From assembly GCA_950097015.1 (NCBI GenBank), contig CATNEN010000033.1, positions 1,426,001-1,490,000 on the forward strand: a DNA stretch of 64,000 bases, in the 5' to 3' direction. Below are positions 3,701 to 46,695 of the stretch, in pieces. Origin of the DNA: Macrostomum hystrix (taxonomy: Eukaryota > Animalia > Platyhelminthes). Position 1 is the stretch's first letter; each line of letters opens with the position of its first letter. A model generated the notes under the pieces. It made no database searches, was not told the origin of the DNA, and saw only the letters and a list, made by a program, of their open reading frames with translations. Made by a program: the position numbers and the translations under genes.

Positions 3701-6700
3701 TCTTTGTTCTTAATTCCACTATCTTTGTGTAAGTTTCTGACAACTTAGTTGTGGATAACTTATTTTATCATTGTAGTTCTCTGTCCCACAATTTTCTCGG
3801 AGTCTTTGTTCTAAGTTAGCACCCGACAGCTCACCTGTACAGGTATTGTGGCCGGTTGGAGCTCAGAACTGTGATTGGCACAACGGCAGATGTAGAGGCG
3901 AACCACGGTAGCTGGAGCATGCACAAATTCAAGATATTACGCTACATATCGGCTAACAAGTGCTAGTTCAATGCTTAAGTATGCTCAGTAGTCGAGTATG
4001 GCTCACGGGCCTCTGGATGAAGCTGATGCGACTGGGCTGTCCGCAGCTGCACACGTTGCTGAAGCCGTCCACCTGGCGGCAGAACTGGCGCCGCCTGTTG
4101 GTCTCCTCGCCCGGTGGCCACAGCGGGCAGACTGGCTCTGCAAAGGTTGGGAAAACATATGTATTTTCGATACATATCGGCACCGAAGATAAAGGATGCG
4201 TAGGACTATTTTCAGCCTCTTTGTATCAGATCAAAAGACAACCCCCACCTTCCTCCAGAGTCAATTTTACAGAGGCCGCCAGTTTCAGAAGTCCTCCGCC
4301 GGCCAGTCGTTTCTCGCCTATCCGTCCCACTGAATTTGGAATTTCATGTTCAAATATTGCTACTTAGTTATTTATAAATAGGTAGTAAAGAAAATCTAAT
4401 TTTTTTACATTTAGAGAAGGAAATCAGAATCCATAAGTCAGTTGGCTGCAGAGAGTCGAACTCTCGACTGCCAAGCGAAGTAAATGCTCTTTTGTAACGG
4501 CCGGATGTACTTTTAGTTGCGCAGGCTGCGGGCTGCGGGCGATACGATTCCGAGCCACTTAGTTAAAAATTTTACTTTAAATCTATGCAAAGCGGGATTC
4601 AATTGATTAGCGCGCCAATTCGAAGGATCAGAAATTTTATTTTTTCAAATAAAGGCACAGAGATTTTAAAAATACTCGCAACATACTACTCGGGTGAGCA
4701 GCAGCAGTCGGCCTGCGGCAGCGGAGAGGGCGACGTCTCGGGCCATCTGCCAGCTGCCAGTCGCGTGGTGCCGCATCAGCGAGGCCTGAGTGGGGTGAGT
4801 GAGCTAAAAGTGCAATCACAGAAATTTTCCTGACTCAAAAAACAAACCAAAGAGAAAGTGCAAATCATAATTAAAAAAATAATAAATAATTGATTCCACC
4901 TGCCCCAATTGGGCCGGGTGTGTTGCCCACAGCACAGCCGCAGCTAATTGCGCGTCGCATCTGAAGGCTGCGTACGACTGTTCAGTCCATGGACTGGTAC
5001 CCTATGTAACAGCTGGGTGAACTGAAGCAATGCAGAGTTAAGTGTCACGCCAAAAGGACACAAAGGACACAGTGGAGTCGGGAATCGAACTCCCGACCTT
5101 CTGAGTCCGACGCTCAAACCACAATGCTAAAATCCCCCAACGATTATGAAGTGAATCACACTACTTACAGTAGCTTGGTTCACGATGAAGACGTGGTAGC
5201 CGGGAGCAGTGTCGTTGACGAGCTGGAAGGTTTTAGAATTCCGTTTAAAGAAATACAAGTCACTAATAAGAGATTAAATGCACAAATGAATTTCTTATCA
5301 CCACCTCCAGAAAATATAGCTCATCTGCCAAAACCTGACAAAATCCCCATTCGAATACTAGGAAGGATAACTCCCCATTTTTTTAAGAACCGAAAAGAAA
5401 TCCTAATCAAATCCTAACTTCCCATCCCAACCAGAGAGAAATCCAAATTTTACATGCCAACCAATAATAAATTACAATTTTCCATCCTAATCAGAAAGAA
5501 ATCCCAATTTTCCATCCCAACCAGAAAGCAATCCCAATTTTCCATCCCAACCAGAAAGAAATCCCAATTTTCCATCTCAACCAGAAAGAAATCCCAATCC
5601 AATTTTCCATCTCAACCAGAAAGAGATCCCAATTTTCCATCCCAACCAGAAAGAGATCCCAATTTTCCATCCCAACCAGAAAGCAATCCCAATTTTCCAT
5701 CCCAACCAGAAAGAGATCCCAATTTTCCATCCCAACCAGAAAGAGATCCCAATTTTCCATCCCAACCAGAAAGAGCTCCCAATTTTCCATCCCAACCAGA
5801 AAAAGATCCCAATTTTCCATCCCAACCAGAAAGAAATCCTTATTTTCTATCTGAACAAAGATAAATCCCAAGAAATCCCAACCCAGCACAGCTCCCACTC
5901 TGTCATCCAGCGGACGTAGTCAGCTCACCAGCACCCCGTCGATGGCCAGCGCAGTGTGGCTGTCGCTGCACCAGGCCTCCAGATCCACGGAGGGCCGCGC
6001 ACTGTCGCTGAATTGTGTCGCTGAGCCAGCCTGGCTGATGTGGCGGTGTAGGCCGACTCCACTCTCAATCTGGGTCTCTGCGGAACAATGCAATTGCTGC
6101 AATTTTGATTGCCTGCTTTGTTTAGAAAAACAACTGCATAAGCACAATAAGCTCGTACATCTGTACTCAACCTTGCAGTCTGAGCAGCTACTGAGCACAA
6201 AATTTGTCTCCGTTAAAATCCCCAGCGACCTCGGGATGTGTGGACTGTTCTTCCACACCTTCGCTACCTTCTAATCTTTCCTACTGTTTCTTTTCAATCT
6301 CTTCTGTCCTCCTCTTGCTATCTTCCCCTCCCTTCCTCTCTCCCCCTACCTATCCTCTCTTCGTCTCTCTCTCAGAGTCTCTGACCCATTGTAATTCAGT
6401 TGCTACAATTTTCTCTCTCTATTTCTATCGATTTTTTATCCTTTAAAGTTTCGTCATTCAAAACATAATATATTCACGGCCCAGTGCGCCAAATACATTT
6501 CGCCTTAACTTTCTGCCCTAATGAAGACTATAATACGAGTAGTATTCAGCAAATTTAAACTCAAACTCTGCGCTTATTCTCTGCCTCGTCAGTCCCTAGA
6601 TTGGAGGTACTCTCACTCTCTCTCCATCTCCTCTCTCCTTCTCTCCCTCTCTCCCCCTCTCTCTCCCTCTCTTTCTCCCTCCCTTTCTCCCTCTCCTCTC

Positions 6701-9700
6701 CACCTCTCTCCTCTCTCCCGCTCTCTCCCTCTCTCCCTCTCTCTCAGGCCAGCACCGGCGTCTCGTACGACCGAGTCAGTGTCACGGAGTTGAGTGAGTG
6801 TGGATTGAGTTGCGGGGCGCTGCCGAATCGATTACGATATGTTGAGATTGAAAGCTGGATTTGAACAAGCGCCTATAGCCTAATGGCTAGAGCGCTAGGC
6901 TAGACTCTACTGATGAGCTCCAATAAGAGCGAAACGCGTCTGGAGTGGCCTTGGTTCGAATCCTGATTTCAATTTTTTCGATACATATCGGAATCGATTC
7001 CAACATTAGATTTTTGAAATTCAATGGGCAGTGTCCTCTCTCCTCTCTCCCTCTCTCCCTCTCTCTTTCTCCATCTACGTCTCTCCATCTCCTTTCTCTC
7101 CCTCACTCTCCACTCTCCATCCTTCTTCCTCTCTCTCCCTCTCTTTGATTGCGGAGGTAGGCTTTCAGGGAGCATCCGGACATCCAGCGAACTGACGCTA
7201 GCCTACTCACCCTGCTCAAACTGGACCTGGAGCGCCGGTTCGAGGTCGAGGGCCAGTTCTTTCTGCAAGTGAAAGGCACCGCGATGGGGAAGTGGTTTGC
7301 GCCCAGTTACATGGGCTACTGGGAGCAGAGGGGCTTGGAGGCCAGTCCGACGAATCCCGCACTGTGGCTGCGCTACATTGACGACATTTTCGGGCATCTG
7401 GCGCGGAACTGTGGAGAGCTCATCCGATTTCTTGACGGTCTTGACCCTAACATCAAACTGCTACTGAACTGCAGTAGCTCAGCAGTCAACTTTCTGGACA
7501 CCACTGCCTTCTGGGACCGCGAGAATACGATGCGAGCATCAAGAAGCTGGGCACCAGAGTGTCCTTCAGGCCAACTGACAGTCGAACCCTCATTCACCGC
7601 GGCTCGTTCAAATGAGTGGTCCCAACTTGTTAGGTAGGCACGACGCTGCTCGCTGATGGCGGATTTTGATACAGCCTGCACAGAACTGCTGTCCAGCCTC
7701 AGCGCTACAACAGACGCTTCCTACGTGACAACTCTCTTTTTGTCTCTCTTTTCAGTCTCTCGCTGTCCCAGTGCTTTCCTAGAATCATTGTCAGAGCGGC
7801 ACGAATTTCTTTGTTCAGGCAAAAAACACGCACAGACGATTAACTTCAGCCGACGCCCAGCAGACGGTAGCATTCTCTTTATTTGATTATCGATTTCGCA
7901 GCGGCCTCACAAAGAACAGGCAGCAGAAACTCAAAGGGGCAAAAGAAGTCCCCTGGCCTCCCGGTTACACGAGAAAGAAACGATTTCTGGGCGAGCCTCG
8001 CCCTTCCCCGTGTGGGCAAACAATGTCAGTTGGAGCGGAAGCCAACGAGCTGGAGGGAATCCCGAAGCGGTTCAATCAAACTGTGAAGGATGACTGACAA
8101 CCGCCAAAGCTATGGGATGGGGAGGAACTGGAGTTTATACCTGTGCGTGATGACGCCTTGGCCTGACGCGCTAGCGAGCTTGTCCAGTTTGGATCAAAGC
8201 CGCGAGCTAGGAACCCCATCACACGCCCGAGGTAGGGCACAAGGGAAACTACTAATTACAATGTCCCCAGTCTCACAATCTCCCAAAGTTGATTGCCCAA
8301 ACTGTAAAACGCGAGCATCGGTTCATATTTAGCTAAGGACTAAACATATGGATCTTTTAATAAAAATTATTTTCACTTTGGTTGGAAAGCCTTTAGCTAT
8401 ACTCAGACAATTAATTTCCCAAGATTTTCCCCTGAGGGATAGACCAGTACGTGACTGAATCCATCATCCCAGTGAGTGGGATAACGAGCGAAAGCCTTTT
8501 GATAGCTGGCAGGGCACAAGACGTAGCTGGGATACTCAATTCCCAGTCTCTCCCTCTCATCCCAGTCTCTCCCTCTCATCCCAGTCTCTCCCTCTCATCC
8601 CAGTCTCTCCCTCTCATCCCAGTCTCTCCCTCTCATCCCAGTCTCTCCCTCTCATCCCAGTCTCTCCCTCTCATCCCAGTCTCTCCCTCTCATCCCAGTC
8701 TCTCCCTCTCATCCCAGTCTCTCCCTCTCATCCCAGTCTCTCCCTCTCATCCCAGTCTCTCCCTCTCATCCCAGTCTCTCCCTCTCATCCCAGTCTCTCC
8801 CTCTCATCCCAGTCTCTCCCTCTCATCCCAGTCTCACCCTCTCATCCCAGTCTCTCCCTCTCATCCCAGTCTCTCCCTCTCATCCCAGTCTCTCCCTCTC
8901 ATCCCAGTCTCTCCCTTTGCTTTCTCCCTTCCCTTCCGTTTTCATTTTCTATCTCCCTCGATGACTATCTGCCCATCTCAACTCTGGCTGAGCCCAGAAT
9001 TGAGTTCAGTTTTCAAAGCGCAAGCACAGCGAGTTTGAGTCTCATTAAAGCAGCTGGGACGAGACTTGCAAGTAGTTTTATGCACAAATTAGATTTACCT
9101 AGCCAAGCGCCGTCTCGGACCAGGCGAGCTTGTATGTACTCAAACTCGAGCGGATAGCAGGGTCCTGCTCAGATCGATATTTGCCAACCCGCCTCTGTCT
9201 AAATGCGCATTCTCTAAGCAAATTAATTGTCACATTACACGCCAGGGAAGTGAGCAATTTTACTTGCAAATTCCTCTCAGTAGAATTCGTGCTCGACCTC
9301 GAAGAGACGAAACGGTGGCTGGCAAAGCTGGCAGGCAATCAGGGCTAATTGAATTTGCCTCTCCAAGACTGGGTGGGAAGTGGCAGGCTCCTGACTTCCC
9401 GTGCCGGTGGATGGTGGGTCTCTGCTGGGAGCTCAAGAGCAATGGGTGACGGGTGTGATTGTGTGATTGTGTGCGAGTGACTGTGAGTGACTGTGAGTGA
9501 CTGTGAGTAACTGTGAGTGACTGTGAGTGACTGTGAGTAACTGTGAGTGACTGTGAGTGACTGTGAGTGACTTGAGTGACTTGAGTGACTGTGAGTGACT
9601 GTGAGTGACTGTGAGTGACTGTGAGTAACTGTGAGTGACTGTGAGTGACTGTGAGTGACTTGAGTGACTTGAGTGACTGTGAGTGACTGTGAGTGTGTGT

Positions 9701-45453: not shown

Positions 45454-46695
45454 TCAGATCCTATGGGAAGCAAGGCGGCGCTGAAGGCTAGCCACGTAGG
45501 CCCGGTGCAGCGAGCTCAGAAATGCGTCGTCATTCTCAAGCAAGTAGAACAGGCTCTCTCGAAGCTGCTCCTTGGTCAGGGCGGGAATGTCGCCGCTACT
45601 GGACACATGCGCCTGCTGCTTCTGCTGCTCTCTGGATTGCTGCCGCTGCAACTGGGGCGGCGATGTTGGAGTCTGCTGCTCCTGGGGACAGTCGGCCATG
45701 AGCTGGCTGGCTGCGCCCTCCAGCATGCCGGGAGTGAGCAGAAATTCTTCCTCTTCCTCATCAGCAGCTGAGCAGGAGGCCTCGCTTGATCGGGTTGGCT
45801 GCTGCTGCTGCTGCTGCGGCTGGGGCTGCCTTGGGTGTTGCTGCGGCTGTTGCAGCTTCTGCAGGCCAGTAACCAGGCCCAGCTGCTCCTTGATCTGGTG
45901 CGACATCTCGGCGTATTGATCTCGCTGCTGCCGCGGCAGAGGAGGCCCGCCAACTCCACCGTTAGGAACGCTAGCTAAAGTGCTTGAAACAGTAGACGGA
46001 GGCTGCTGCTGCTGCTGCTGCTTGCTGGCGCCACCAAAAAGGCTGTCAAGGCTAATTACCTTTGGCTGCTGCTGCTGCTGCAGCTGTTGCGGTGGCGGCT
46101 GGGGCAAGCCTCGGTGTTTAAAATCAGTCTGAGCTCGACTTAGCATTTGCAGAATGCTGTTGGCCGCATCGGCATTCGCTGATTGCCCCGAGGATGGCTG
46201 TTGCTGCTGCTGCTGTTGCTGCTGCTTCGCAGAAGATACCGCAGCTCCAGCCTTGCCTTTAGCAGCAGCGGCTGCCCGGTCCTCTACAAGCCGTAGCGAG
46301 TCGCCGCCAAGCGACACAACCAGCTGGCCGACTGAGGCGGCGATACGCTGGCAGTCGCGCTGAGTGTAGAACCACATGCCGTGAATCTCGCCGGACTCGG
46401 TTCGATACAGAAGGAAAGGCGGCTGTAGCTGCAGGCCCATGGCTTTGGTGATTTGCTGGACATGATTCTGGGTGCTGCGCTTGTTCAGCAGCATGAAGGC
46501 ATACTGTGGCGCCACAGTGCGCCGATACAGCAGAAATACACCGTCGCAGTTGGATTTCTCCCATTTGCCTTGCACATACTTGTACAGGGCGCTGGAGGTG
46601 CACTTGTCCAGCACCTCGCAGCCGAATTTATCTGTCTTTACAATTGCAGACAAATTCAAGGCGATGTCTTCCGAGCTTTTGCTGTCCTGAGCCAT
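45454..46695 (-). CDS. DCP1: mRNA-decapping enzyme subunit 1 (EVH1 domain plus C-terminal trimerisation domain), single coding exon, 413 aa
   Basis: N-terminal LNLSAIVKTD..ALYKY..WEK...GVFLLYRR..P.Y...LN.....LQPPFLLYR...EI.G.WFY matches the Dcp1 EVH1 domain; C-terminal LTKEQLRESLFYLLENDDAFLSSLHRAY matches the metazoan Dcp1 trimerisation domain; Q-rich linker between them. Confidence 0.95.
   Translation of the reverse strand: MAQDSKSSEDIALNLSAIVKTDKFGCEVLDKCTSSALYKYVQGKWEKSNCDGVFLLYRRTVAPQYAFMLLNKRSTQNHVQQITKAMGLQLQPPFLLYRTESGEIHGMWFYTQRDCQRIAASVGQLVVSLGGDSLRLVEDRAAAAAKGKAGAAVSSAKQQQQQQQQQPSSGQSANADAANSILQMLSRAQTDFKHRGLPQPPPQQLQQQQQPKVISLDSLFGGASKQQQQQQPPSTVSSTLASVPNGGVGGPPLPRQQRDQYAEMSHQIKEQLGLVTGLQKLQQPQQHPRQPQPQQQQQQPTRSSEASCSAADEEEEEFLLTPGMLEGAASQLMADCPQEQQTPTSPPQLQRQQSREQQKQQAHVSSSGDIPALTKEQLRESLFYLLENDDAFLSSLHRAYVASLQRRLASHRI

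Follow-up and report, generated by a model that had tools for sequence, protein, structure and literature searches.

The schistosome repeats Sm-alpha and Sj-alpha are short interspersed element (SINE)-like elements, reportedly described by Ferbeyre in 1998 and by Laha in 2000. Two other described systems combine mobility with a hammerhead ribozyme: the animal retrozymes that lack long terminal repeats (non-LTR retrozymes; Cervera and de la Pena 2020, PMC7229834), and the non-autonomous derivatives of Penelope-like elements (PLE) (Craig 2021, PMC8557442; bioRxiv 10.64898/2026.07.22.740005). Here we describe a repeat at 6703-7072 of a window of 64,000 nucleotides (the whole stretch of DNA analysed, contig CATNEN010000033.1, positions 1,426,001 to 1,490,000), in which a hammerhead is nested within a tRNA-derived module with an A box, a B box and a run of six T (T6). 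It is probably a solitary, full-length copy of a young, non-autonomous hammerhead retroelement of ~336 bp, of the non-LTR retrozyme or Sm-alpha-like kind, copied by a PLE.

The element and the non-LTR retrozymes are both non-coding, ~300 bp long and equipped with a canonical type I hammerhead, which has in both cases a helix I of 6 bp, a helix II of 4 bp and a helix III that is very short and has a palindromic loop. Both have a self-paired, rod-like RNA (predicted, for the element) and target duplications longer than 4 bp, and both are found alongside PLEs with minimal hammerheads (PMC7229834). A dependence of animal retrozymes on PLEs has been put forward (PMC7229834; bioRxiv 10.64898/2026.07.22.740005). 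However, most loci of the element contain 1-1.6 units within CT-rich microsatellites, whereas the retrozymes form long tandems, and circular RNA is a feature of the retrozymes but only a putative one of the element. The ribozyme of the element is also nested in a tRNA-derived module, of which no mention was found in PMC7229834 or bioRxiv 10.64898/2026.07.22.740005, and no paper in the retrozyme literature searched also names a B box.

For Sm-alpha and Sj-alpha, the comparison was made only through the passages of PMC2770079 that deal with them. As portrayed there, they share with the element a length of ~330 bp, a flatworm host, a tRNA-related part of the RNA polymerase III (Pol III) type, a type I hammerhead with a very similar core and loop II, and a dimer-prone helix III. 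According to the same passages, tRNAscan-SE labels Sm-alpha copies as tRNA-Gln genes or pseudogenes, so the tRNA-like part of Sm-alpha is presumably contiguous, whereas in the element the ribozyme splits this part and no tRNA can be called. Text searches, which did not take in the original description, found no description of where the Sm-alpha boxes lie relative to the ribozyme.

With the non-autonomous PLE derivatives, the element shares partial tandems that resemble pseudo-LTRs, head-to-tail insertions, a bias towards microsatellites, variable target duplications and a hammerhead. It differs from them in having weak similarity to the 3' end of its candidate partner, and in a central module which comes from the head of a tRNA-derived SINE and not from a PLE pseudo-LTR. 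An initial annotation of this DNA had considered the family possibly undescribed; hammerhead-bearing non-autonomous retroelements are a described kind, and only the nested arrangement of a ribozyme in a tRNA-derived module appears to be undescribed. New here are the definition of the unit with its linker, the microsatellite targets, the long target duplications and a candidate PLE partner, together with a pile-up of 5' ends and the use of homology to place the ribozyme in the anticodon loop.

The repeat unit and its insertions

When the copy number of 6825-7000 was checked, as the initial annotation had proposed, at least 126 candidate loci were found in the genome (220 Mb, 42 contigs); the 40 that were scored showed 97-100% identity over this interval, and the copy number in the genome is ~115-130. 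The 122 non-redundant copies lie 1-4% from the consensus, from which the window copy differs at 3 positions. The monomer of 336 bp consists of a unique part of 291 bp, numbered u1-291 (window coordinate minus 6744, so that the predicted cut site is u196/u197), and a CT linker of ~45 bp (Table 1), which is found before nearly all full-length copies and after u291 in every copy. Similarity between copies continues for 124 bp upstream and ~100 bp downstream of the 110 nt from the A-box region to T6.

The copies are graded at one end and fixed at the other. Probes of 31 nt, with up to 3 mismatches allowed, detected 63 A-box, 92 core and 115 B-box segments, and counts rising in this order are the gradient expected from 5' truncation. 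By BLAST, 77 of 83 copy matches end at u291, and their starts vary. In front of about 20 full copies stand the linker and the 3' part of a further monomer, this part beginning anywhere between u126 and u285.

The motif of the CT-rich array differs between loci and is the same on both sides of most insertions; on sequence grounds, the element appears to insert into CT-rich micro- or minisatellites. Target duplications could be read where the flanks are not simple sequence, and they were of about 83-87 bp at locus L005, about 92-100 bp at L089, 37 bp at L019 and 25 bp at L112. Pseudo-LTRs, variable target duplications and a preference for microsatellites are hallmarks of PLEs (PMC8557442), and the element shows what would be expected of a PLE partner by that description, namely pseudo-LTR-like partial tandems, target duplications of variable length and the microsatellite bias. 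A few loci are true tandems or arrays (L031, L034, L047, L051 and L086). L034 has 5 copies with a period of 2.3 kb, and L034, L047 and L051 are higher-order arrays that grew at the DNA level.

The 5' ends were counted for copies containing the B-box probe, which misses copies starting after u204. There were 28 ends at u1-146, 7 at u147-156, 11 at u161-169, none at u170-180, 20 at u181-197 and none at u198-204. For the upstream partial copies, whose detection did not rely on the probes, there were 0 starts at u198-225 and 14 at u226-285. The sharp edge of this distribution coincides with the predicted cut site of the ribozyme. Furthermore, the insertion at L005, delimited by its target duplication, has as its first base u197, which directly follows the cut, and continues with the linker, a full monomer and the closing linker, a structure that the reverse transcript of a cleaved multimer would have. 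The pile-up of 5' ends and the start of L005 at u197 are, at most, suggestive of in vivo cleavage having left its trace in the genome.

In 70 sampled copies covering the A box, the A box was intact in 50, the core in 56, the B box in 59 and T6 in 62, with all four intact together in 33. Divergence per position is flat, at 1-5%, and is uninformative on selection for the boxes or the core since the sample was chosen with the motifs. The co-inheritance of boxes and core expected by the initial annotation is seen in the 33 copies that keep everything, but it does not extend to the truncated copies or to the array L031, which lacks the A box. Among L084, L109 and L116 there are copies with internal deletions of the tRNA-like 5' half (u116-154 or u137-159) in which the ribozyme is kept, and one copy (L116) retains u1-159 and is missing the ribozyme. 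When contigs of sequencing runs were compared with 6740-7040, near-identical copies were present in two organisms; the contigs of the four runs aligned in this way showed no joints.

In a head-to-tail dimer, the longest stop-free stretch is 90 codons, which agrees with a non-coding unit of ~150-450 bp with a type I hammerhead. The monomer RNA is predicted to fold into a rod (-130 kcal/mol, z -6.4), in which the B-box region (6953-6976) pairs with 6843-6866 and the A-box region forms a separate hairpin. The box sequences could persist without being used by Pol III, because RNA structure alone might keep them.

The hammerhead and its tRNA-derived surroundings

The A box, hammerhead, B box and T6 reported in the initial annotation can be read directly at their places within 6869-6978. 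The hammerhead has the CUGAUGA...GAAA core and a GUC triplet, that is, a final base other than G, as in type I. A pattern of the core gave 73 matches in the genome compared with 1 for the reversed control. At a permissive threshold, the Rfam model Hammerhead_HH9 (RF02275) matched 6895-6959 with 35.5 bits (E 1.3e-7), which falls short of its gathering score of 52 because the loop of helix III is missing; with gathering scores, Rfam gave zero matches. The model search suggested in the initial annotation thus recognised the hammerhead, but below the score at which Rfam would list it. The HH9 family has the same core and helix II sequence and a helix I with an internal loop, as here, whereas its helix III consists of 3 bp and a loop and that of the element of 2 bp without a usable loop.

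In an alignment of eight element families, 89.7% of the helix I cells are paired, and all six proximal pairs of this helix are altered on both sides across the families. Covariation as high as this was reached in 0 of 500 shuffles, and slid partners pair in only 19-46%. The covariation that the initial annotation had proposed to test in two stems is thus present in helix I; helix II is invariant across the eight families because the search selected on its sequence. In the predicted fold of an isolated 69-nt RNA, pair probabilities are 0.58-0.99 in helices I and II. Helix III is unable to close within one molecule, and a self-duplex of ACGCGU between two copies is predicted at -8.9 kcal/mol. 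ACGCGU agrees with the definition of a dimer-type helix III (1-2 bp with a small palindromic loop), and this short palindromic design, which works best as a dimer, is that of the canonical metazoan type I hammerhead (PMC4209133). The core, the helices and the predicted self-duplex all uphold the earlier view of an intact ribozyme with a dimer-prone helix III, and we regard the motif as genuine and of the dimer-prone metazoan type.

The same genome contains a tRNA-derived SINE whose head is identical to the tRNA-like 5' half at 24 of 28 positions (z 11.4) and to the 3' half at 16 of 19; this identity is partly guaranteed by the choice of the reference, and the match extends beyond the words used for selection. 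In a pattern search, GCCTAATGG was common to the 5' half of the element and genuine tRNA-Arg genes. Gapped alignment to one SINE head matched u124-157 and u191-222 as two blocks; the 33 nt between them comprise the core, helix II and, of helix I, the proximal 5' strand. Because this alignment places the insert at about the anticodon loop, the ribozyme sits where the initial annotation had supposed, at the anticodon position, and the region of the former anticodon stem now serves as helix I. Both box-bearing halves are genuinely tRNA-derived, though they no longer make a foldable tRNA, and the central module appears to be a chimera between the head of a tRNA-derived SINE or tRNA-Arg-like gene and the ~33 nt at the anticodon-loop position.

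As for the tRNA fold, the acceptor stem is absent and, in the window copy, 3 of the 5 T-stem positions are paired, with one more pair regained in subfamilies that have G or A at 6964. ARAGORN found no tRNA, and thus no cloverleaf, on the + strand whether introns were allowed or not, and neither lowered thresholds nor 260 in-silico deletions of the ribozyme gave a + strand tRNA with ARAGORN or Rfam. Calls on the opposite strand were rejected as spurious; the Rfam tRNA model reached 15 bits (E 1.8) on that strand only.

The SINE family whose head resembles the box-bearing halves is dispersed in the genome (L071-L077 and L079, for example L076 at ~1500-1650). Its body is one that we take to be similar to the CORE/Nin-DC type SINE domain. 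A pattern search also showed eight near-identical tRNA-Arg(TCG)-like genes within 13 kb (G000:C38:20168247-20180975).

The identical 26-nt core and helix II was found in 36 metagenome contigs (L117-L152) belonging to other element families. At least four such hammerhead families are represented, with differing helices I and palindromic helices III (ACAGCUGU, ACAACGUUGU), and two of the contigs match the HH9 consensus itself. No A- or B-like box was found within 120 nt of the ribozyme at any of the 36 loci. In run contigs of a third organism, 36 of 41 nt of the ribozyme core are shared, and the flanks are different ones that extend helix I and are without boxes. Related ribozymes in other organisms thus lack the boxes, and the nested arrangement is specific to this lineage within the data that could be reached.

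Table 1. Positions of the repeat, its ribozyme, its tRNA-like parts and the flanking sequences in the window.
Feature	Position	Strand	Details
PLE copy A, 3' untranslated end	6380-6612	+	flank, outside the repeat
Decayed minimal hammerhead in PLE copy A	~6517-6551		reads CTAATGA; intact relatives keep CUGAUGA...GAAA
Locus-specific CT-rich array	6613-6702	+	PLE tail or target microsatellite
CT linker before unique part	6703-6744	+	conserved; equals end of preceding monomer
Unique part, u1-291	6745-7035	+	from multiple alignment of 30 loci
Inverted-repeat upstream arm	6843-6866	+	complementary to B-box region 6953-6976
tRNA-like 5' half	6869-6903	+	D-arm region with A box, and 5' strand of former anticodon stem
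A box	6876-6886		TAGCCTAATGG; 10/11 positions match
Type I hammerhead	6898-6950	+	predicted cleavage between 6940 and 6941
Helix I, distal	6898-6901 with 6947-6950		4 bp; beyond two-base bulge A6902/G6903
Helix I, proximal	6904-6909 with 6941-6946		6 bp, including one G-U pair
Core CUGAUGA	6910-6916
Helix II	6917-6920 with 6927-6930		4 bp; loop CAAUAA
GAA	6931-6933		GAAA at 6931-6934
Palindrome ACGCGU	6934-6939	+	helix III strand, able to pair between two ribozyme copies
C17	6940		GUC cleavage triplet at 6938-6940
tRNA-like 3' half	6951-6972	+	decayed T arm with B box
B box	6953-6963		GGTTCGAATCC; 11/11 positions match
T6 run, Pol III terminator-like	6973-6978 (u229-234)	+	inside mobile unit
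T5 run	7011-7015 (u267-271)		inside mobile unit
CT linker at monomer 3' end	7036-7072	+	closes the target-duplication-bounded copy L005 as a 45-nt linker
Locus-specific CT-rich array	7073-7146	+
PLE copy B, 5'-truncated reverse transcriptase fragment	7147-7650	+	flank; with stop codons

Penelope-like neighbours and a proposed copying route

The window copy sits in a CT-rich junction between two PLE fragments. Copy A shares ~70% identity with the 3' ends of those PLE copies that have reverse transcriptase (RT) and GIY-YIG reading frames, and copy B, with RT motifs in its translation, is 69-72% identical to PLE copies on three other contigs. A candidate target duplication around the window copy, GATTGGAGGTA (6600-6610) and GATTGCGGAGGTA (7147-7159), of the form GATTG..GGAGGTA, was dropped because GATTGGAGGTA is the conserved 3' terminus of the PLE and GATTGCGGAGGTA lies within the RT reading frame.

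A Neptune-like PLE family in the same genome is better preserved than the window fragments (L066:924-2465 on the - strand, L067:1111-2472 on the + strand, and L068). Its members show, in order, RT motifs, a CX5CxxC linker, a GIY-YIG domain with CxxC between GIY and YIG, a 3' untranslated region and a tail. The 3' untranslated region contains a minimal hammerhead, with covariation between copies in its helix II, and is followed by long CT-rich minisatellite tails. The classification as PLE is based on these motifs in translation and on the language-model neighbours of the frames, which are animal proteins with RVT_1 and GIY-YIG, and not on Pfam. Short PLE 3' ends are found in tails of the hammerhead element, and vice versa, at 7 or more loci.

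A life cycle can be proposed from the copy structure, the choice of targets, the target duplications and the PLE neighbourhood. Transcripts exceeding one monomer would fold into a rod, and two ribozyme copies could then join through ACGCGU, building helix III and permitting a cut after C6940, which would leave a 2',3'-cyclic phosphate and a 5'-OH. The resulting RNA of unit length, either linear or circularised by ligation, would be the template, copied by the RT of the Neptune-like, endonuclease-bearing PLE of the same genome. Priming would take place in the CU-rich linker, at nicks in CT-rich microsatellites.

Several observations weigh against this account. Most loci contain 1-1.6 monomers and are not long tandems. 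The Pfam matches of the PLE frames are below threshold (RVT_1, E 0.013; GIY-YIG, E 0.044), and the similarity between the element and the PLE 3' end is weak, being limited to the CT-rich tail, CAGTGYC and one match of 19/25 (E ~5). The enzymes of long interspersed elements (LINE) might also do the copying. Six runs contain the sequence, all as assembled Logan contigs and none recorded as RNA, and such contigs cannot show starts, ends or circles. Finally, in the hot spot most 5' ends are 2-16 nt upstream of the cut, chiefly at u191 and u193, and this is not explained by simple run-off. One possible cause is a jump to the 3' end of a different cleaved RNA, with early release thereafter. Two others could operate without cleavage and likewise count against the account, namely a possible polymerase block, either where the palindrome is paired or at a ribozyme that is folded or dimerised, and microhomology with the CT-rich targets, which could also place ends here.

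The 19/25 match joins 6770-6794 (u26-50) to the PLE 3' terminus (L066 513-537) and includes GTCAGTGCC; CAGTGYC also closes the unique part of the element at 7029-7035. The motif and the match could be a shared recognition motif, or they could be due to chance (E ~5).

Two further features of the window were noted. Just upstream of the PLE fragment, at 5400-5880, there are ~11 tandem copies of a ~40-bp unit (AATCCCAATTTTCCATCCCAACCAGAAAGA and variants). At 45454-46695 on the - strand, an intronless open reading frame of 413 aa has DCP1 and mRNA-decapping C-terminal domains (Pfam E 2.4e-28 and 9.6e-12).

Rival accounts and a possible role of the Pol III boxes

A Pol III transcript starting from the boxes cannot be the template for transposition, because T6 and T5 lie within the mobile unit. 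This bears first on the proposal of the initial annotation that 6869-6978 is a minimal, stand-alone Pol III gene or retroelement of ~110 nt, running from the boxes to T6 and cutting itself into RNAs of ~72 nt and ~37 nt. The spacing of A box, B box and T6 is much like that of an intron-containing tRNA gene, the tRNA-Arg genes of this genome have the same A-box core and a T6 at a similar distance, and the four motifs are intact together in 33 of the 70 sampled copies. In addition, 6822-6978 is exactly spanned by a 157-nt contig, from a run of uncertain type that is possibly RNA, which ends at the last T of T6, though the end of a contig is not evidence of the end of an RNA.

Another point in its favour is L085 (G000:C7:10882100-10884300, minus strand), the only copy to end after T6. 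It contains only u64-235, stops right after T6 and lies in AT-rich, not CT-rich, surroundings, where a short A-rich repeat may be its target duplication. One possible origin is that another enzyme retrocopied a transcript terminated at T6. However, the mobile unit is the 336-bp monomer, with T6 and T5 internal to it, and the 124 bp upstream and ~100 bp downstream are common to the copies, whose ends match neither a Pol III start nor T6. The ribozyme is also found without the A box, in truncated copies and in the tandem array L031, and a divergence of 1-4% throughout is that of a young repeat and not of a gene. The 110-nt unit therefore fails as the mobile unit and is an unlikely account of the locus, while such an RNA may be a side product of the element.

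If the locus is instead the 336-bp retroelement, the ~110-nt Pol III RNA is possibly a by-product or a helper, and not the template. Under the helper idea, the A and B boxes and T6 would be kept because Pol III makes a tRNA-shaped hammerhead RNA of ~110 nt that acts in trans. The small RNA would either pair through ACGCGU with the lone ribozyme in long transcripts, licensing their cleavage, or its tRNA-like shape would recruit tRNA-splicing enzymes, for example the RtcB ligase, that close circles. We consider this helper role, by whichever of the two routes, quite unlikely.

It is very unlikely that the element is a classical tRNA-derived SINE that Pol III transcribes, that a LINE enzyme copies and in which the hammerhead is a passenger. 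The internal A and B boxes are homologous to tRNA, as they should be in such a SINE, and the same genome has a true tRNA-derived SINE with a head homologous to the box-bearing halves; blood-fluke Sm-alpha is also described, in the passages of PMC2770079 that treat it, as SINE-like with a hammerhead. However, the tRNA-like part lies in the middle of the unit and not at its 5' terminus, as full copies reach at least 124 bp upstream of the head, and T6 and T5 are consensus features, so that the unit contains the internal Pol III terminators that a SINE should lack. The 3' end is the CT linker, with no poly(A) or LINE-like tail, and PLEs are the better match for the partial tandems, the target duplications of 25-100 bp and the insertion into microsatellites (PMC8557442). 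Of a satellite-like repeat spread by DNA-level events only (unequal exchange or segmental duplication), with ribozyme and tRNA-like sequence having no role, there is hardly a chance: L034 (5 copies, 2.3-kb period), L047 and L051 are clearly DNA-level arrays, but there are more than 100 dispersed loci on many contigs, with graded 5' truncation, a fixed 3' end and clean target duplications flanking single insertions.

To summarise what the hammerhead retroelement would mean, it shows the fusion of a self-cleaving ribozyme and a tRNA-type promoter module into one compact RNA, in which the anticodon stem has been reused. As a small, young family of ~120 copies, it offers a test case for the proposed PLE dependence of animal retrozymes: its target duplications are clean, its junctions resemble pseudo-LTRs, its targets are microsatellites and a candidate partner is at hand. 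The pile-up of 5' ends at the ribozyme would be a genomic trace of the shape of the template RNA. If the host is a free-living flatworm, the element also bears on the origin of Sm-alpha in blood flukes.

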